64,000 nucleotides of DNA from Calcarisporiella thermophila CBS 279.70 (taxonomy: Eukaryota; Fungi; Calcarisporiellomycota). The notes below the pieces were generated by a model. It worked only from the letters and a program-made list of their open reading frames with translations, was not told the DNA's origin and did no database searches. Position 1 is the stretch's first letter; each line of letters opens with the position of its first letter. The stretch is taken from contig NW_027192211.1 of NCBI RefSeq assembly GCF_041956535.1, positions 303,516 to 367,515 of the forward strand, read 5' to 3'. Shown here piece after piece: positions 1 through 12,022 of this stretch. Both the position numbers and the translations under genes were made by a program.

Positions 1-1008
1 GTGAGGAAAGGAGATGGGGGAAGGGATGGTCATTTGGGATGGAATGCGGGGGGGGATCAGAGGCGGCAGACCTGCAGTCATAGAGCAATTTTGGGGAAGG
101 CAGCCAAGGGATGTAATTAAATAAACCGATTTCAGCGGACTAAAAAAGCGGGAGGAAAAAGTTCCCACGTCTCGTGTGTTTGGGCTGTCAAAAATAAACG
201 GTGAAAATAAGGAAAAAAAGAAAATGCGACCCGCCCGCAGCACATTCCAAGTCCCACGCGACTCGCGGAAAATTTAGAGTTGCCCAAGATCTCCCCCGCC
301 CGCCCACCCAAGCTCCCTAAGCAGATCTCCCGCTCCTCCACCCAGCGGCCGGCATCTTGGCTCCCGCCTCCACGGTTGCCCTCCCGCCGCCGTGATTTGC
401 CCAAGTAGGTTTGGTGCCACGACACCTGTGTTTGTAGATCGTGTTTCAGACATCCGCGTGCAAAGCAACAACACGCGCCCCAACGGAAAGGGGCCGGCAG
501 TAGCGGTTTGAATGGAACGAGCGGCTCCAACCCTGGCCTTCGTCCGCTGCGCTATTGCAAGCGGCCGGCCCATGCACCCAGTTGGCCGCGGCGCATCCCC
601 CCGGCCACCACCCGAAACGGCCGACTAGAGCCCGTGTGCAGAGCCGAGCGCCCGGCGGTAAGATTCTCTGACACCGTCATGCAATCCGCATGGTTCGTTG
701 GTTGGGTTTGTTTGCCTTTCAGATTAAGCAACCTAAAGACAGGAGCCAGCGCAAAAGCGGGGGGAGGCGGCGACGCCGTGAGCCTATTTCAATCCGGTTC
801 CAAACTTGGCGATGTCGGATTGGATTCGGACAGCGGCCGTCGGAGTTGAGTGGCGGGTAGGAGCTCAGGAGCTCGGATTGAATTGGCCGTTACGTCTTTT
901 CCTACTCGACGCGCTGCTGTTTGGCCGCGAAAATAAAACGCGCTCTCTACCGAATACCATCTGCAACTAATTAATCCAGATTTCGACGCGTCATTACGTA
1001 CCAAGCGG

Positions 1009-3331
1009 ATGAACAGGCTTCTTGATGACTTCACGGGCATGAAGCTGTCCTCGATCGAGGAGGAGGCCTCTCCATCACCTCCTCCCCATGGCCAGCCCCC
1101 GCTCTCCGCGGGATCCAACGTGACATCGTCGGCATCCTCAAAACCCTCAAGCTCGGAGCCGTCTCGCACAGGATCTGCCATCCCGCCTAAGCAGCTGGAA
1201 TCGGATCCTGCTACAAAGCGCAAATGTGATGTGACACAGATCTGTAGTTATCATTCTCAATCATCTTTCCCATTTTGGTCGATATGGTGCTTGACCTATA
1301 TATACATTTTTCTTTCTGTATATACCATCCCCCCCACCACAGACTTTATGCAGTATTATTTCGACTGGCTGCACTATATCCACACGCGTAAACTAAGAAC
1401 GGAACAGTACAAAGAAGAATTGCGGAAATCGAACGTGAGTAACGCTTGCAAAAATGGTTGATTTCTGTTCTTGACGACGTGCTCCCGATATTTCTCTGCA
1501 TAGCTCTCCATCGAGGAAATGACGGAAAAGTGGAAAGAGTTCTGCGGGAATGAGTCCGCCATGCTACGGAAGCGAAGGACAAGGACCCGTGCCAACGATT
1601 TTCATATATTGACGCAGGTCGGCCAGGGTGGATATGGGGCTGTAAGTGCTATTCTTTTGAGCTCTTTTTGTTCCCTTCCGTGCCGCTCACCAGCATGCTT
1701 GCGGTAATCTCTGTTTGTGCCTATCGCGCACGTCACAGGTATATCTGGCGCGCAAGACGGATACCAGCGAAGTTTGTGCGCTCAAGAAAATGAGCAAAAA
1801 GTTGCTTCAAAAACTTAACGAGGCAAGAATTGTCCCCATGGACGAATCTCTCTAACGCTGCCGGATATCTAACCGCGTCTTGCCCTCTCTCTCGCTTTAC
1901 CTACCTAGATTGATCACATTCTCACGGAGAGAGATGTTCTGACGGCCGCGAACTCGCCTTGGCTCGTAAAGCTACTCTATTCTTTCCAAGATGTGGAGCA
2001 TGTCTACCTCGCCATGGTAAGATGCAGATCATCTCTTCACCCTTCACTGTGTATGGGCTTCAATTCTTGGCTATGTTGAAAGGAATATGTCCCGGGAGGT
2101 GACATGCGAACCCTCCTCAATAATAGTGGAATCCTCCGAGAGGAACACACGCGCTTTTACGTTGCAGAGATGTTCATGTGCGTCAATGCATTGCATCAGC
2201 TAGGATTTTTGCATCGCGACTTGAAGCCTGAAGTGGGTTCCCCTCCTGTCCTCCTGTTGCATTCCATCCAGTTTGGCTAAAATGGACCCTCTTGCAGAAT
2301 TTCTTAATTGACTATAGTGGACACCTCAAGCTGACGGATTTCGGGCTCTCAAAGGGCTCCTTAAGCTCCAAACACCTTAGCACACTTCGCTCAAAGGTTC
2401 GTATATGGTCGATCTCTTTCCTACCACCATTTTGGTTTTGCAGTGACTCCATTTGCTCATCGACGCTTGCTTACCTCTTTTTATCTTCCTCAAACTTTTG
2501 CAGTTTGAAGCCATCAAGAACCAGAAGTTGATCTATCGCTCCTCAATCGAGCGACGCAACATTCACACCATCCGGAGAGCAGAAAACGTGACTTGGGTAG
2601 AGTGTTTTCTGATCTGTCGACCTCTCTTATTCCAGCCCCCTCCCCATTAAACCTCCTCCCATCATCTCCATTGCTGTGGTTAGGCTTATTCGCTGGTGGG
2701 GTCTCCCGATTACATGGCTCCTGAAATTCTCGGAAAAGACGGCTACGATTACGCGGTTGACTATTGGTCCATAGGCTGCATCATGTATGAGTTCTTGGCA
2801 GGGTTCCCCCCGTTCAGTGCTCCCACCATGGACGAGGTGTGGTTGAATGTCTATCGGTGGCAGGAGGTACTGGAGCGCCCCGTCTACACCCGCCCCGAGG
2901 ACCTCGAATTTAATCTCACCGACGTAGCATGGGATCTGATCACACGGCTGATCACAGCGCGTGACCGGCGTCTCGCCTCCATTGCCGAGGTGCAGATCCA
3001 CCCGTTCTTCGCCGGGTGGCATTTCCCCCGGATGCGGGAGGAGGTGCTTCCGCCTTTTGTGCCGCAGCTCGACTCCGAGTTTGACACATCCTACTTCGAC
3101 GACTTCTCCAATCCACAGCACATGGCGATGTACAAGGAGGTGAACGATAAGAAGGAGAAGCTGGAGGCTCAGCTGAAGAGCGAGCCGGTCAGAGACGCCG
3201 TGCCAAGAAATGCCTTTGTTGGCTTCACTTTCCGACATAAGCAGGCGTCACAGTTGCTGGACGGCGTTGCGAAGCGCGAATACGTTAACAGTAGCGATGA
3301 GAGCAGCTACTACCGTGAGTCTCCTTCTTAG
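1009..3331 (+). CDS. DBF2: NDR/LATS-family Ser/Thr kinase, Dbf2/Dbf20/Sid2-like (mitotic exit/septation network), about 9 exons
   Basis: Hand-spliced frame gives TKRKCDVTQIYFMQYYFD, LRKRRTRTRANDFHILTQVGQGGYGAVYLARK, HRDLKPENFL, LKLTDFGLSKG, AYSLVGSPDYMAPE, and an AGC tail FDTSYFDDF...FVGFTFRH. Introns are GT-AG except one GC-AG (1823-1908). Confidence 0.93.
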
Positions 3332-4640
3332 CATAAGCATTCCATGGGGAACGCAGAAGAGGGGGAGGAAGCGGAAGTGCTCTCCCCCTCTTATTCTGAT
3401 GCATTTTGTCTATTAGGTACCATGTTCTAAAGATCCGACTACCGCTCCACAACCTGCACGAAACTCTATTCATTCATTCATATTAAACCTCCTTCTCAGT
3501 ATTTCTACATCTCACATACAGTATAATATCTCTATATCTCTATCTATCTTTAATGGGTTTATTACCAAACAGTGGCCAAGTGGTTGGCTGCGGATGACCT
3601 TTCTGGCGGTTGTTTTTTTTTCTTTGTGGTTGAGTGAGAAAAAGTGATGGCCCTGTCTTAGACCTAACTTAATGGTACTCATCTCCCTGCACCCTCCATG
3701 CTTGAGCCACTAGCATGAACAATAAATTTTCTGCGGACTCTTTTTTTCCCTGCATGGGATCGCTTGCAGAACCGTGTCGCCTTCACTCTTACCGTATAAA
3801 ACAGGTGATGACCGATGGTAAAAGAAACCCATTTATCTTTACAGCAGTAGTAGCTGTCAACATGAAATTCCTTGAGCATTTTCGAATTAGGGGCGACCAA
3901 TGTGCTTAATGAGTATTGTATCTATTCGCGATTCTAATACAGAAGGATAACACCGGCAGGGAATCCCCCTCCAAAAAAAAAATCCTACGTTGACCAATGG
4001 GATCATTTGGCTATCTTTCTGGAAATCCACGCTTTAATAGATGATGCACCAGTATTACGTACTCTACACGGGAAGGTGCTAGACGGGCCACTTTACTGTA
4101 CCTGGCCGGATTTTCAGTATGATTCTCCTAAGGAGGAGGATCCAAGAGGAAAAGCACTTTAGCTTCGATTAGTCTAGTGCTATCATTCACACGGCCAAGG
4201 TGGAAGTGGAGAGATGGAGTGGAGAGATTTCTATGCCCTAAGCGATGTTGGGGGAACTTCTATTGGGGGTGGGCCGAGCTTTTTGGAATGACTCTTGGCA
4301 AGAGGACAAGATTTAATCGAAAGCTGCAAAGCAAACCCAGCTTACGCCTGCGACGGAGAGTCGTAGGCGAAGTATGCACATGTATTCTGCAAAAAGTCAT
4401 GCTAGGGTGGACTCTGCGGAGCCCTGGGACCTTGTCGCTCGCCAATCTCCTCTTTACTAACCGAGTCTTCTAGAAAACACAGCTCAGACAAATCGGAGCT
4501 GAAATTCCAACCAAGACACCCAAGACCTTCTTCTATTTAGAGAAAATGCCTACCTGCCAAGAGCCTGACAAGAAAAATTCTTGGAGTGGATATATAAAAT
4601 TTAATCAACCAGTATACGGCTAGGGAAAAAAATAACAGAC

Positions 4641-5732
4641 ATGCAAAATTCAACTAGTATGGCCTCCCCCGCTTCACAAGAGCCGCCTCAACCACCAGCT
4701 CACTTGTCAAGCTATGAAACCTCAGGACCAAACCAGACACAAGAGATTGAGCCACCTAGCACCGCACATGAACCAGCCCTGCCCGAGTCATTGGCTGAGG
4801 TCGAGGTCCAGCATGATCCAGTTGAGAGCCTGTACGCCATGTTCCCTGAGCTTGACCGCGAAGTGATCCAGGACGTGCTTCTTGGAAGCTGTAAAGGCGA
4901 TATGCAACGGGCAGCAGAGCTGCTGCTCTCTCTTACAGACCCAGAGGCGTATCAGGGGGAATCATCCATGGCGAGAAGAGATAGAGATGTAAGCCCGTCC
5001 TCGAGCGCCAGGGAAGCAGGGCGACGTGACAGTCCTCAACCATCGGACTGGAATCGCACCGAGCAAACCCCCCCGCCGATCACGGTGACCCAGGTCTCCG
5101 GCGATCATGATGCTACAAATTCCCACTATCAGACAAGCACTCCGGCCGACCAGCTCCGTGGGGACGAGGAGCTAGCATTCCGATTGATGCAAGAAGAGCA
5201 GGAGCGGATATACCAATCGATACGTTACTCATCTGCCTCCTCGCCGCAACGCCAACAACGGCCCAACCATCAGGGGCCAGCCTATGGGCTCGATAATCAA
5301 GGTAAGCGAATGCCGAAGCAATCAGCTTGGAGTGAAGAGTGCTTGACATTCCGACGATTTAGATGGCTCGCAGCTAAGGGAGCGGATCACAGCGGCCACA
5401 GAGAGTAAGCCAACCTCCCATGGGCGGCGCAAAAGCATGGGTTATTAATCCATTGTTCTTCAATAGGTACAAAAAAGAGGTTCAGGGAGTGGTACGGGAA
5501 AATAAGCAATCGCCCGGTACCCAAGCAGGCATCGGACGGAGCCCAGGGGCAGCCGAGTGTAGTGCTGCATGTGCAGCATGATGATCGGCCAGGTACGATC
5601 TGTCTGTTTGTTATTGGTATCCGTTTCCTTTCCTCTTATCTTTCTTCATGGTCAATAGTGGATCGCCGTTGGGCAACCACCCCTGTGCAAAGCACTACAC
5701 TCATAGATCCAGCCTACACGCCTCGGGAATAG
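4641..5732 (+). CDS. CUE-domain ubiquitin-binding protein, Cue5-like, 4 exons
   Basis: CUE motif VESLYAMFPELDREVIQDVLLGSCKGDMQRAAELLLSL; UIM/MIU-like QLRGDEELAFRLMQEE. Three GT-AG introns keep the frame to TAG at 5730-5732. Confidence 0.8.
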
Positions 5733-5954
5733 CCGGTTTGACCATTAGGGGAGAAATATTCATACTCGTTTTATCCTTATTCACCCTATTCTTTATTGCA
5801 AATGTATATTTTTTTTTCGTTTTCTACAACCGTGTAATTCATACCACATAAGACTATCTTAGTAACCGCGAAAGCAACAATAAATTCCTTAAAGGTCGCT
5901 AGTCAACGGTAAGGTAGAGTAGAGCCACAAGAGGTTAAAGGGGCGTGGGAGAGC

Positions 5955-6387
5955 TCAAACGGACTCGGCGCGTTGCTCCCGCCCTTGTTCACGCTTTCGT
6001 TCTTCCAGCGCACACTGCATATTTTTGATCTGCTTGTTGCTCAGCAGCTGCGCGATTGTGTTGCGACTCAAGTCAAAAGAGACTCTGCGATTATGTTTCT
6101 GGAACGGGGGATTTGTAATAGCGGGGGACATCTAGCAATAGACAAATGGCTTGAGTCTCTAGAGATGGATGCAATTAGCCATTTGGAAAATCACCTCGTG
6201 CGGCGTGCAGGTGGTGTTAGGAAATTCGCCTATACGACCCTTGCCTTCGTATGTACTCTGAGCACGCCATGGGATTAATGGAGAAAAAAAAAAATCATGG
6301 TCAGTCTGTGTCCAGATGACGGTGACCATCATTCATGTCATGCCTTACCCTTCTTGATGAACTCTTGGAACGTCTTTTTCTTGCCAT
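5955..6387 (-). CDS. Small 92-aa basic protein with RVxF (RRVSF) motif; not in the ORF track
   Basis: Exons 6387-6349, 6257-6195 and 6131-5955, joined by phase-0 introns GTAAGG..CAG and GTGATT..TAG. Protein: MARKRRSKSSSRRSTYEGKGRIGEFPNTTCTPHEMSPAITNPPFQKHNRRVSFDLSRNTIAQLLSNKQIKNMQCALEERKREQGREQRAESV. Confidence 0.6.
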
Positions 6388-7203
6388 GTAAAGCTGTCAG
6401 CTCCAACAATTCCATTCACACTCTATCTTAGTCGCAAAACGGGAGGCTTCGATATAGAGCCCTCAGTCAATTGTTAAGGATAACAATGGTGAGGGGAGGA
6501 TATAAAATCAAAGGAGGGGGGGAGGGCAGGTGCAAAAGGTTTCTGATGTTCTTTGAGATGGTGTCGGCTTGGAAGAGAGCGAGAGGGGATTGGCAATCAC
6601 TTTTGGCAATGACTTTCAAGAGGAAAGAAGTGCCAGAAAAATCTCGATTTTTATTGAGTATGGAGGGTTGCTGCACCACGTCTCGTGATCTCTCTCGTAT
6701 CTTACGTTTTTTCCAAATACGTTTTCGAAGCCAAAATAGAAAACACTAAACGCGATTAAATTGCGACTTGCGTCTTCGTGGAATCATGAAAATAAAACAT
6801 GGGCAACCACCACCGATGGCGACGCCAGCTAAAGCGTCAGGCTGCAGTGATCAGCACCAAGAAAGACTGGTTTCCTCTAGGGCCCCGGGGTGATCCAATG
6901 TTTCTTCTCCATGAGCTTAATGACGAATTAACCCTCGCTTATCCGGAGCTTATGTAGCATAAGATAGGGTCAGGATATTTAGAGTTGGGCGTGTAACCTT
7001 TCCCCAAGCAGCTCGCCATTTCCAAGCCTGCTTTCAAAAACGCATCCTTGAATGGCCATTTTGCTCAGGGTGTTTCATCCTCCCCTCTCCTCCCCCTCTC
7101 TCATATCAGATGTGGATATTTTGTTTTATTGTATACCAAGAATTTTATGGTTTAAAAGTAGGTGTAAGAGAGGAGGGAAAAGAAAAGAGACTCAAAGGAA
7201 TAT

Positions 7204-9880
7204 TTACACTAGCTCTGTATCCTCCAAATATCGATACTGGGACGGCGATGAGGTCGGAAGCCGGGGGGGGGGGAAAAGAAAGCAAGGCGGGGGACCATTA
7301 GCAGAAACCCAATGGGAGCAGAGCGAAACCAAGAATACATACCTCAAATCGGAATTCGGACTTCTTGCGCTGGCACCAGGCCCCCTCGTAGTCGAAGTAG
7401 ATGTACGTGCCCTCCTCATACTCGTCTGTGATCGCGCGAGGCTCCTCGTGGCGCTGGAACCATGTGAGGTACTTTTTGTGGAACCGCCACGATTGCCGTT
7501 TCAGTTCCCGGGCCGCGAGATACTGCTGATACGTCCCTGCCTGGTAGTAGAAGATGAAGAAGATGGTGTCGATATCTAGCCGTTCGAATAATGCCGGGTG
7601 ATGGGGTAGAGGTTGTTGTGGGTAATGCGCGGGGGTGGGGTAAGGGTTGCGTGGAATGTAGTGGCGGGGGCGCTCCATATCGAGAAGGTCCGGCAGGCAG
7701 GCAAGGCTTGTCTCCAGCATCGCATGTAAAAATTCGCGGTCATCACGGTGCTGTTGGGATTGCTCCTTGGTTGCTTCGAAAGGCGCAACCAGGTCCTTGA
7801 GCGATGGTGGCAGCTTGGTCTCGATCTCGGCGGCCGGAGACTCCCTGGAGTCCTCTGCGGGCGATAATGCGGACTCCTGCAGATGGAAACACAAATATGG
7901 AGATGAGAGGCTACTGAGCTCACCAACATACCCGCGTTTATACATACCTGCTTCCCGGCCTGATCGTCGGACGGCTGCTCGTGTAAATCCCCGACTGGAG
8001 ATGCGGTCAAGTCTCGTGAAGCAGGCGACATCGCTTGCCTTGAATCTACCTCCTCAGACTCGGTTGTGGGAACAGAGACTTTTTCTCTTGTGGCCGATTC
8101 GGATTTCGGCGAGGTGGGCAGAGCAGCGGAGGGAATGGAGTGAAAAGCCGGAGGTGATGTCGCAGAGGGAGTAGAGTAGAGCTGTTGGGGCTGCTGGGAT
8201 GGAACAGGCTCCTGTTGCGACGTCGGTTTTGGCATAATAGCTGCGCGTTGAATGGGGAGGGCTGTCTTTGCAGGGGATTGCGGAATCGGCATACCTAAGG
8301 AAAATAAGAGGACGAGTTTAAATAAAGCCAAAAAAAAGCCCTTGGGTTCAAGATATATGTACTGGTCTCTATGATGTCGGAGTGAATAATCGCAAAACAA
8401 AATGGATCAGTAAAACGGTAGCCTTTAGAAAGTCATCCACGAACTTACTTCTTTGCGGCGCTGGAGGTTGTTTCGAAATTTTTGCTGGCTGTGCCGGTGG
8501 TGTGAGCTAATGCATTATTTGGTACAAAATCAATTTTTCCACCGCATACATAGATACACTTAGTGAATTATTAAAAGGGCTTACCTCCTCTGGTTCTTTG
8601 ACTCGTTTATGCGGTGATATACTTTCTGCACCAGCCTCATCCTTTGCCCTCTAGATAATGAGTGATGGAAGTGGGGAGGGGAGAAGCATTGCTTAGATAA
8701 TATTGAGCAAAAAGAAAACAAGTGATCCTAGCCAACCTCTTTAGTCGTTCGTGAATCGTCTGTGGCGCTATCATCTTTGCTTCCGGCATACTCGTCGTTC
8801 ATTATTCCATAGAGTGCTTCTTCCTCCTCGAGCTCTAGATCATTGTATATATCTTCGTCCTCGATGAAATCATCCTCCTAGACGTGGGGCGGTATGTCAA
8901 TTGGCCATTCATGCAGGCAAAATACATAAAACGAATCAAAGCTGGGCCCATACCTGATTGCTTTCTACATAATACCGCACATCTTCTTGTAATGGAGTCA
9001 CTCTATCCACCGGGATCCTGTCGTTTTCCAGCAACCGTAATATTAACTCCAGTCGACTTGTGTGCCATTTATGTCGCTCAATCAGATGGTCTATCTCGGC
9101 CAGACGCTCCATCTTGGAGTTGTCCTTACGTCCTTTCCTCGCTGCAATCTGAAGCGTTTCCATCTCGGCCTCTAGAGTCTCGATTTGCAGACCCAAATCC
9201 TCGACGCTCTGTGTGATCCATGCGCAGCAATCCACCTTCTCTTTCTCCTTGGGATCTAGTTTGGCCATCTGGAGCAGCCCCTCTTTTGAATATGCCTTCG
9301 TTTTCATCTCCTTCTCGCAGGCCTTGAACTTCTCCATTTGCTATTTGGAAATAAACAAACCAAATCCCGTCAAATCTCGATCTCGGAGCCTAAATGCTCT
9401 CTACTGTCAGGCATAAATAAGAGAGGACAGCAATCGCACCTGTTCTATCAGCTTGCGGTTTTCTGTTAATTGGCTTTTGTCCTTGATCTCATTGGAGGCT
9501 ATCCAGGTTCTGATTTGGTCGCGTAATCTTTGTAGCTTCTTGATTTCCTTTTTCAGATCGGCCTCGAACTTCTCCTTCTGATTTGCATTGGTTGCTGTCT
9601 GGATTTTATCAAAGATCTCCTCGAACGTTTCGACCCCCTCGGAAACCTTTTTCAGTACACGATCGATTTCGGCTATTGTTCGCGATGGATGAGCAGAAAG
9701 CAGAAGAGTTAGTAATGAGTTGGGACGGGTCTCTCATTATTTTATATCCATTTTCATCAGAATATGGGTGTTTTGAATCTCCTGGTAAAATACCAAGTCA
9801 TCGAGCGTAACCTCTCCCCTTCCCTCGATTTTCCCTTTTAGTCACCCTACACACTTACTCTGTAATTTTCTGTTTGCCAT
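7204..9880 (-). CDS. NOT3: CCR4-NOT complex subunit Not3/Not5 (CNOT3)
   Basis: N-terminus [24 protein letters not shown]...[23 protein letters not shown]...[22 protein letters not shown]-terminal NOT box [44 protein letters not shown]...FRFEYRYLED. Confidence 0.95.
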
Positions 9881-10098
9881 TGCAGGCTATTTTCAAAATT
9901 AAAATAAAACTTTGAAAAAACGGGAGTGATGAATTGCAAACTTATTAAAAAAAGTTTTGATGAGCTATTTCGAATGGTTCAGCGAGGCGCAGCAATATAA
10001 ATTGGCCGTCACGGGGTACAAGGTTGGGTGTACGCGTTCTAAATTGGCCATATTCTCTCTTTTGACTTTATTAATCATTGTGGAAACTTTTGGTTGCC

Positions 10099-11170
10099 AT
10101 GTCTTCAGAAGCCATTGCTGTGGGAGGTGGCTATGTAGTGCAACGGGTAGGATGGATTCTTTGTATTTTGGAAGTAAACTCCTATCACTTATCTCCTTCA
10201 TAATTGTTTCTTAGGTCGTCCCTGATGACAATAACTGTCTCTTCCGATCAGTAGGTATGAGAAAATGGCCCATTTTATTATAGATTGATATACAATTTCA
10301 TTCAAACTTCTTTTTTTTTAATATTTATGATATCAATCGGCACAGGGTAGTGACTTGAGACAAACGGCAGTGCCTATTATTTTGACTGCTCTAATGATGC
10401 TGTCTTTATAGATATGTCTTGGAGCAAGATCCTAGTGTAGTGGCAAAGCTGAGAAAGCGTGGGTACAATTCTGGCATTAACAATACTATTAATTTACACA
10501 GCCATTTGAACTGTCAATAGTTGTTGCTGATTGCATTCGCAAAGATACCGACACATACTCCGAAGCCTTTCTCGGAAAACCAGTAGAGGAGTATTGCAAC
10601 TGGATTATGAAGGAGAGCTGGGGCGGCGCAATCGAACTGAGCATTTTATCCAAGGTTTATGGTGTCGAAATTGCGAGCATTGACATCCAGACTGGGCGGG
10701 TGGATCGTTTTGGAGAAGGGGAATATGCCCAGCGTGTCATATTGCTGTATAGTGGAATTCGTAAGTATACCCCACCGCTTTTCTATGCCTCTCTTTTTGT
10801 ATTTCGATACCACTGTGTGTTGTGTATAAACGATTTTGTAGATTATGATGCTGTGGCAATGACCCCCGATCCGAACGCTCCTAGGGAGTTTGATCAGACA
10901 CAGTTTGAGGTCAGCGATGACGCGGTGCTCCCTGCTGCGCTGCAGCTCGCCGCTCGCCTCCGAGAGGTTAGCATTCTCGCATCCATTTTTTCCTATTCAA
11001 CCAGAGACTAATATGCCATGTATTGGACATGACAGAAGAGGCAGTACACCGACCTTGCCAACTTCACGCTTCGGTGTTCCGTCTGCCAGACTGGATTGCG
11101 CGGCCAAAAGGAGGCGACTCAACACGCGCTCCAGACAGGGCATGCAAGTTTCGAGGAATACCTATCTTAG
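10099..11170 (+). CDS. OTU1: OTU1/YOD1-type deubiquitinase (OTU domain + C2H2 Zn finger), N-terminally short; includes a predicted 1-nt exon at 10346
   Basis: [18 protein letters not shown] (catalytic Cys), [21 protein letters not shown] (catalytic His), [31 protein letters not shown]. Confidence 0.9.
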
Positions 11171-11355
11171 TCAGCTTGAGACTATTGCGTTATCTTTTAT
11201 ATTTTTATTCATTTTTTTTTCTTTCCCATTAACTGCACAAATAATAGAAAGTATAATAACGTATTTTTTTTTTTTGCTTCCGTAAGACGGCAATAGATTT
11301 AAATGTTTTTGATATTTTTTTTATTTCCCTTTATTTTCAAACAACAAATGCATCT

Positions 11356-12022
11356 CTACGCAGAGGCTTTCTGTGTAGCGGGGTTCACCTTCTTGCCGTC
11401 CTTGTTGAAGCGGAATCGTGGAGGAGGGTTGCGATCCCGACGGCCCTCGCGAGAACGAACGCGCACGATATGGGCGTGGATGGCGCAAGAGACGCAGTAG
11501 TGGAGCTTGACATACAGCTTGGGGAGGGCGTACTCCTGGTAGATGGAAGCCTCGGTGATATCACGGACGGCAGCGGATTCGACCATGTTGCGCACGGTGA
11601 AGCGCTTGATCGCCTTGTCTTTGGGAACGCAGCGAGCACAGTTGGAGCAGCGGACGGGCTTAACGTGGCCACGGCCGTGCTTATTACGTCCATTGTTGCG
11701 GCGCTTGGTCGTCTATTAATCAAGAGACATTAGTTGACCGATTCACTGATGGTGGAAGAAAAAGAAAATCTAGGGTGGAGTTTCTCGGCACATGAAAGAG
11801 ACAGAAAATCGCAGGTTATGAAGATTTTCATCATCGGAATCAGCTCCGCTAATTCCGAGTAAAACCCTGTCTCCCTCTGATTGCATCATGGTTGATCATG
11901 GAGAACAAGTCCATCACTTCATGATCCCGTTCACCATCGAAATATCCACTCCATAGTGCCAAACAACATCCCCGCTGTGCCAGTAATGATGGATGGATGG
12001 AAACAGATAGATTACTCACCAT
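11356..12022 (-). CDS. RPS26: 40S ribosomal protein S26 (eS26); exon 1 is the ATG alone
   Basis: ATG|GTGAGT intron of about 305 nt, then [56 protein letters not shown]...[21 protein letters not shown]. Confidence 0.97.

Follow-up and report, generated by a model that had tools for sequence, protein, structure and literature searches.

Internal exons of a single nucleotide have so far been published for two genes of plants and for one gene family of Fusarium, namely Arabidopsis APC11 (PMC4674806), plant VPS55 (PMC8831610) and Fusarium CYP621A (PMC12940212). In both plant genes, the one-base exon has been conserved for a long time, and sequential splicing of its flanking introns has been proposed (Guo and Liu 2015, PMC4674806; Yu et al. 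2022, PMC8831610). The APC11 exon is an A, as proven by base substitution, and has been lost along with both of its introns in some lineages; the VPS55 exon is alternatively used. The CYP621A exon (Nelson and Syed 2026, PMC12940212) is a G in the middle of a glycine codon, embedded in AGGGT between a phase-1 and a phase-2 intron. It is backed by orthologues and transcripts, is missed by gene models, has been reported from Fusarium orthologues only, and is proposed to have originated when a cryptic AGGGT rescued a lost base. A related arrangement is the stwintron of Pezizomycotina, two short introns that are removed in order; the donor, branch or acceptor of the external intron is broken up by the internal one (Fekete et al. 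2017, PMC5587772).

Here, we describe a one-base exon in the OTU1 gene of Calcarisporiella thermophila, a fungus whose lineage has been placed as sister to Mucoromycotina (PMC6899921). An earlier note on this DNA had proposed the exon and had named APC11 as the only known case, a statement that is out of date given VPS55 (PMC8831610) and CYP621A (PMC12940212). What is new here is the gene, the age of the exon and the paired loss of its introns; one-base exons as such are already known. The literature that we covered, incompletely, contained no published one-base exon in OTU1/YOD1 or in Mucoromycota. Like that of CYP621A, the OTU1 exon is fungal, sits in AGGGT as the middle G of a glycine codon between a phase-1 and a phase-2 intron, has support from orthologues and a transcript, and is overlooked by gene models, but it spans Mucoromycota and Zoopagomycota, and an arthropod intron suggests that it may have arisen by gain of a second intron. 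As in APC11, it has been lost together with both introns in some lineages, whereas the identity of its base rests on sequence and on the transcript of an orthologue. Unlike the exon of VPS55, which belongs to a different gene and kingdom, it is probably constitutive.

The gene lies in a window of 64,000 nt, the whole stretch of DNA that was analysed. Searches with single exons of the spliced model, together with the full-length database proteins P0004, P0229 and P0275 as queries, identify it as OTU1/YOD1: the largest exon retrieves 1433 relatives, and exon searches find a single copy in the C. thermophila genome. OTU1 matches the structures of human YOD1 (4BOQ, E 2.4e-40) and yeast Otu1 (3BY4, E 8.5e-33), and the last exon contains the C-terminal C2H2 finger (PF24560, E 1.3e-20). 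Exon 5 alone falls below the cut-off for Pfam PF02338 (E 0.005), and the alignment shows both the catalytic Cys (DNxC) and the catalytic His (GIHYD) of the OTU domain. Judged by its sequence, the gene encodes an OTU1/YOD1-type deubiquitinase with predicted activity; the OTU domain, its Cys and His motifs and the C2H2 finger at the C-terminus are all shared with yeast Otu1, human YOD1 and plant OTU2. With the one-base exon included (Table 1), the frame is open for 211 codons up to the TAG ending at 11170, and the six introns measure 68, 91, 65, 62, 81 and 69 nt.

The UBXL domain is typical of fungal and animal OTU1, is carried by most fungal orthologues and is absent from plant OTU2. No match to UBXL (PF21403) above the cut-off was found anywhere in the C. 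thermophila genome, nor did a search upstream of the OTU1 ATG find a hidden UBXL exon; in the region 9882-10146, only ~220 nt lie between this ATG and the divergent start of NOT3. The predicted protein is an OTU1 orthologue of a UBXL-less, plant-OTU2-like form, resembling in layout the 208-aa plant OTU2 proteins, which also lack UBXL. Yeast Otu1 requires UBXL for binding Cdc48 (10.1101/2025.11.08.687396). NOT3 (minus strand, 9674-9881) itself starts with a 22-nt first coding exon (MANRKLQ) followed by an intron of ~185 nt, and it has a short divergent promoter region in common with OTU1. At the other end, a minus-strand gene at ~11350-11720, which we take to encode a ribosomal protein S26-like product, converges on the 3' end of OTU1.

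Table 1. Exons and key introns of OTU1 in the window, and the corresponding intron pairs of four orthologues
Feature	Position	Strand	Remarks
Exon 1	10099..10146	+	ATG; start shared with public model P0229; no UBXL in front
Exon 2	10215..10254	+	DNNC catalytic Cys motif (Cys24); last base is the first G of Gly30
Upstream intron	10255..10345	+	Phase 1, 91 nt, GTATGA...CAG; weak branch candidate TTAAT at 10318
One-nucleotide exon G	10346..10346	+	Middle base of Gly30 (G-G-A)
Downstream intron	10347..10411	+	Phase 2, 65 nt, GTAGTG...TAG; branch CTAAT at 10391
Exon 4	10412..10458	+	Contains AAG 10428, acceptor of the public model
Exon 5	10521..10760	+	OTU domain core (WGG ... YSGI)
Exon 6	10842..10966	+	Finishes the catalytic His codon (HYD)
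Exon 7	11036..11170	+	C2H2 zinc finger, stop codon
Rhizophagus irregularis pair (L004)			Introns 74 + 77 nt; Mucoromycota carrier
Gigaspora margarita pair (L007)			Introns 91 + 76 nt; Mucoromycota carrier
Thamnidium elegans pair (L008)			Introns 55 + 73 nt; Mucoromycota carrier
Furculomyces boomerangus pair (L005)			Introns 47 + 62 nt; Zoopagomycota carrier; codon A-G-T (Ser)

A single-G exon is almost certainly required in the C. thermophila OTU1. All coordinates in the earlier note hold (donor 10255, acceptor end 10345, G10346, donor 10347, CTAAT 10391, acceptor end 10411), as do its arguments from the frame: joining 10254 directly to 10412 reads D-M-S-W-S-K-I-L-V-stop, with the stop 29 nt inside the next exon, and donor 10251 reaches 10412 likewise out of frame. 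We enumerated, with GT/GC donors and AG acceptors, every single-intron route from exon 2 into the exon at 10412, as well as the two-intron routes from donors 10251 and 10255 to acceptor 10411. Not one of the single introns joins exon 2 to 10412 in frame. The in-frame single-intron routes enter exon 4 late (GAG 10424, AAG 10428, 10435, TAG 10440 or AAG 10448), removing ~6 to 13 conserved residues. Of the two-intron routes, only removal of 10255-10345 and 10347-10411 around G10346 yields the family sequence from introns that are both normal; the remaining ones demand introns of 40-45 nt whose donors are GC or GTGCCT, or whose acceptor is GAG. Longer micro-exons starting from acceptors 10283, 10345, 10350 or 10359 were rejected, since they either run into stops or create insertions and depend on poor sites and introns of 40-45 nt.

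The restored residues fit the family pattern, which places F-x-x-x-small-aromatic at a set distance after the catalytic Cys; according to the family alignment and the human YOD1 structures, the residues after CLFxSV belong to the OTU domain. G10346 is thus predicted to supply the missing base of a Gly codon in the helix that follows the OTU1 catalytic Cys, and to keep the frame open downstream, as had been proposed. The base sits in CAG-G-GTAGTG (10343-10352) with canonical GT-AG introns on either side, and the gap divides into introns of typical size, 91 and 65 nt versus 62-81 nt for the other four. Their weak points are the upstream branch and the +5 position of the downstream donor: GTAGTG has no +5 G, which the other five OTU1 donors have. 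Need for frame and motif, normal intron sizes, conservation in orthologues and presence of the base in an orthologous mRNA all point to a one-base exon.

Other classes of intron and splice site were considered and rejected. Recursive splice sites are zero-length AG-GT junctions from which no base is retained, and OTU1 has AG-G-GT with the base retained. U12-type introns have an RTATCCTT donor and a TCCTTAAC branch; the OTU1 donors are GTATGAGA and GTAGTGAC, with a CTAAT branch. The earlier note had also drawn an analogy to stwintrons, which fails despite the shared pattern of two short introns and ordered removal, as neither OTU1 intron interrupts a splice signal of the other. Both have intact ends, and removing either makes no new splice dinucleotide. 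Taking out the whole gap breaks the frame, and one base of it is retained in the cDNA of the orthologue.

Aligning orthologous OTU1 loci, as the earlier note had suggested, revealed AG-G-GT conserved at the same codon in four other fungi. The sample read at the DNA level comprised ten named orthologues or transcripts plus one animal; in it, Rhizophagus, Gigaspora, Thamnidium and Furculomyces show the same arrangement of a phase-1 intron, G and a phase-2 intron, with introns of 47-91 nt upstream and 62-77 nt downstream. Counting C. thermophila, the one-base exon is found in five fungal genomes from two phyla. The exon base is G in all five carriers, even in Furculomyces, where the residue is altered from Gly to Ser. 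AGGGT occurs exactly once per gap in 5/5 species, at mid-gap, whereas YAGGGTR arises in the core of shuffled gaps in 1.0% of cases for C. thermophila and 0.2-0.6% for each of the four orthologues.

Further support comes from a transcript of Gigaspora. The Logan contig L006 (run SRR9002097) is 95-100% identical to the exons of G. margarita (L007) and is spliced across ~10 introns; we take the run as RNA because the contig is spliced. Neither flanking intron is present, and the contig includes the 61-nt inclusion junction with the G. The corresponding skip junction was absent from L006, although such contigs drop rare variants and could hide minor skipping. We infer that the base is included in C. 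thermophila as well. On these grounds we are highly confident that G10346 is a genuine, ancient and probably constitutive one-nucleotide exon of the single OTU1 gene.

Three other explanations of the gap have to be weighed against the one-base exon. The mRNA of C. thermophila could bypass a decayed exon by using AAG 10428 or GAG 10424, which would shorten the protein by six residues. A public model makes this choice, the +5 position of donor 10347 is weak, and the UBXL domain has been lost too; but the codons that would be skipped still read YVLEQ, as in the family, no AG intervenes between the CTAAT branch and TAG 10411, AG-G-GT is intact, and Gigaspora has similarly wrong models, yet its cDNA includes the G. 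We regard decay as improbable. More improbable still is a single non-canonical intron (GT...TA, GT...AA or one with a donor shifted by one base) that supplies the G and leaves the mid-gap AGGGT incidental. Since the exon is G in all five species, the Gigaspora cDNA would read identically, and from a transcript by itself one could not tell which G has been used. Such introns would, however, be needed separately in five lineages, and would leave unexplained why a motif expected by chance in 0.2-1% of gaps occurs once, mid-gap, in 5/5 species, dividing a double-length gap into two normal introns. An assembly error, with a base missing at an outer junction, is very unlikely and the least probable of the three, because the same phase mismatch and AG-G-GT recur in four independent assemblies.

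The one-base exon is missed by many public OTU1 gene models. The public C. thermophila protein VTP21DRAFT_5197 (P0229, 205 aa) equals the 211-aa reading minus GYVLEQ, which its model loses by using the AAG acceptor at 10428, and it shows a gap against the human YOD1 structures exactly at the micro-exon site. Broken models at this junction were also found in ~8/38 Mucorales, 15-16/19 Glomeromycotina and 2/4 Harpellales; among Umbelopsidales, Mortierellomycotina and chytrids, no entry was broken. These counts were corrected by eye, as our regex classifier wrongly flagged models of Dikarya, Mortierellomycotina, Linderina and one chytrid. The broken models match the states seen in DNA, which suggests that the exon is widespread in Mucorales, Glomeromycotina and Harpellales. 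A Jimgerdemannia model begins right after the junction, which is a hint only.

Both introns are absent from Umbelopsis vinacea (L092), Podila verticillata (L011), Basidiobolus meristosporus (L009), the chytrid Borealophlyctis (L010) and the blastoclad Paraphysoderma (L003). Umbelopsis and Basidiobolus retain the neighbouring introns, ~40 nt away on the upstream side and ~47 nt on the downstream side, so both introns of the pair went together, and none of the fungi read at the DNA level has just one of the two introns. Metagenome genes added no carrier: 73 of 80 loci show the motif and all 73 are continuous through the codon, although these unlabelled loci are best tblastn matches and hence biased toward intron-poor genes. 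In protein models of Mortierellomycotina with the motif (P0164-P0242), the micro-exon codon encodes Ala in 29/29, and carrier lineages hold Gly or AGT Ser, both with a middle G. It looks as if intron loss freed the base in Mortierellomycotina, a group viewed at the DNA level through Podila only.

Among the carriers, Harpellales fall in Zoopagomycota and all others in Mucoromycota. It is implausible that two introns were gained at neighbouring bases twice independently, so the pair would predate the split and would already have been present in the common ancestor of both phyla. A published timetree places Zoopagomycota at 1,252-796 Ma and Mucoromycota at 1,213-678 Ma (PMC12592215), making the divergence of the carrier phyla roughly 0.7-1.2 billion years old. 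An arthropod OTU1 gene (L123/L124) contains one phase-1 intron of 584 nt at the same Gly codon (L123:619-1202), inside which no AG-N-GT was found. A protein tree confirms orthology, with L123 within the arthropod clade (99/88); it leaves deep fungal nodes unresolved, and the history therefore rests on the published species tree. Protein P0075 has a similar intron-like break at the Gly codon at the protein level. The chances are about even that an older phase-1 intron, which animals share, was joined by a second intron inserted one base downstream of it, a gain that would be placed in an early terrestrial fungus; the estimate is no higher because only one animal species was read and the G-G site favours parallel gain. 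The pair would later have been lost jointly in Umbelopsis, Podila, Basidiobolus and Dikarya. Joint loss fits loss via spliced cDNA, since a one-base exon would leave no room for crossover between the introns of the pair. Such a reverse-transcriptase model for how introns are lost has been described (PMC8476143), and the same type of loss has been invoked for APC11 (PMC8831610).

The ordered splicing envisaged in the earlier note is supported, in that the two introns must leave one after another. The first acceptor and the second donor overlap (CAG-G-GT) and cannot both be bound at once, a conclusion also reached for APC11 by Guo and Liu (PMC4674806). We propose two ordinary short U2-type introns that would be recognised by intron definition and removed singly. 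As to their order, we modestly favour downstream-first; upstream-first appears somewhat less likely and a mixed order unlikely. In the downstream-first order, U1 on AGG/GUAGUG would mask the upstream acceptor, and the nearer donor 10347 would pair with the strong CTAAT branch, so that removal of this intron would shut the route for skipping all 157 nt. The branch is consensus CTAAT downstream and the weak candidate TTAAT upstream. Computed against the 5' end of the genome's own U1, the predicted duplex is -7.3 kcal/mol at donor 10347, inside the range of OTU1's other donors, and -5.6 kcal/mol at donor 10255. The genome has two U1 snRNA matches, of which L132 has the canonical 5' end and L133 lacks it at the same offset. 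In the four orthologues, U1 pairing rises by 0.3-2.1 kcal/mol after removal of the upstream intron, which argues for upstream-first.

Skipping gives a premature stop at codon 39, upstream of three later junctions, as the earlier note had anticipated; retention of the upstream intron also leads to a stop at codon 39, and that of the downstream intron to one at codon 31. Products with such early stops would probably be degraded, which would amount to quality control rather than regulation. The earlier note went further and saw a possible on/off switch, in which skipping or intron retention coupled to NMD would set the OTU1 level. All three mis-spliced products do yield early stops, the strong branch and good upstream donor make a 157-nt skip feasible, the structure has been kept very long, and plant VPS55 exons are alternatively used (PMC8831610). 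We nevertheless consider a regulated exon unlikely: no evidence of regulated skipping was found, the G is present in the sole transcript seen, both introns are dispensed with in at least four lineages, and long retention can also be put down to how hard it is for one intron of the pair to be lost. Neither was a conserved intronic element or structure found. The proposed GGCAC/GTGCC hairpin exists and appears in the predicted fold, but only at chance level (z +0.32; 122/200 shuffles fold as well as the C. thermophila gap); it was not seen in the four orthologues, none of which clearly beats its shuffles. A broader proposal is slightly less likely again, namely that early-diverging fungi keep ancient 1-2 nt exons (OTU1, CCDC25, Ras2, others) through a dedicated ordered splicing route and that OTU1 controls whether its base is included, for instance in response to temperature in the thermophile C. 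thermophila, as a decay-coupled switch.

Other tiny exons occur in the same genome. CCDC25/JLP2 contains a one-base exon G (L129:1438) between introns of ~102 and 65 nt, which completes the Trp codon (TG-G) of the WFH motif ahead of TTT CAC. Two Ras2-like paralogues have a 2-nt exon AG (L100:1251-1252; L101:1284-1285) that completes Glu (G-AG) and directly precedes the exon encoding TYDPTIEDSY of switch I. These cases make the splicing feat of OTU1 less exceptional for C. thermophila.

The OTU1 case provides a one-base exon that is conserved over two fungal phyla, has the support of a relative's transcript, and has a readable history. It explains why OTU1 models are broken beside the active site. 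With its 157-nt gap and culturable Mucorales orthologues, it offers a compact natural substrate for studying how the spliceosome orders introns that lie one base apart. Together with CCDC25 and Ras2, it suggests that exons of 1-2 nt are a regular, overlooked feature of early-diverging fungi.
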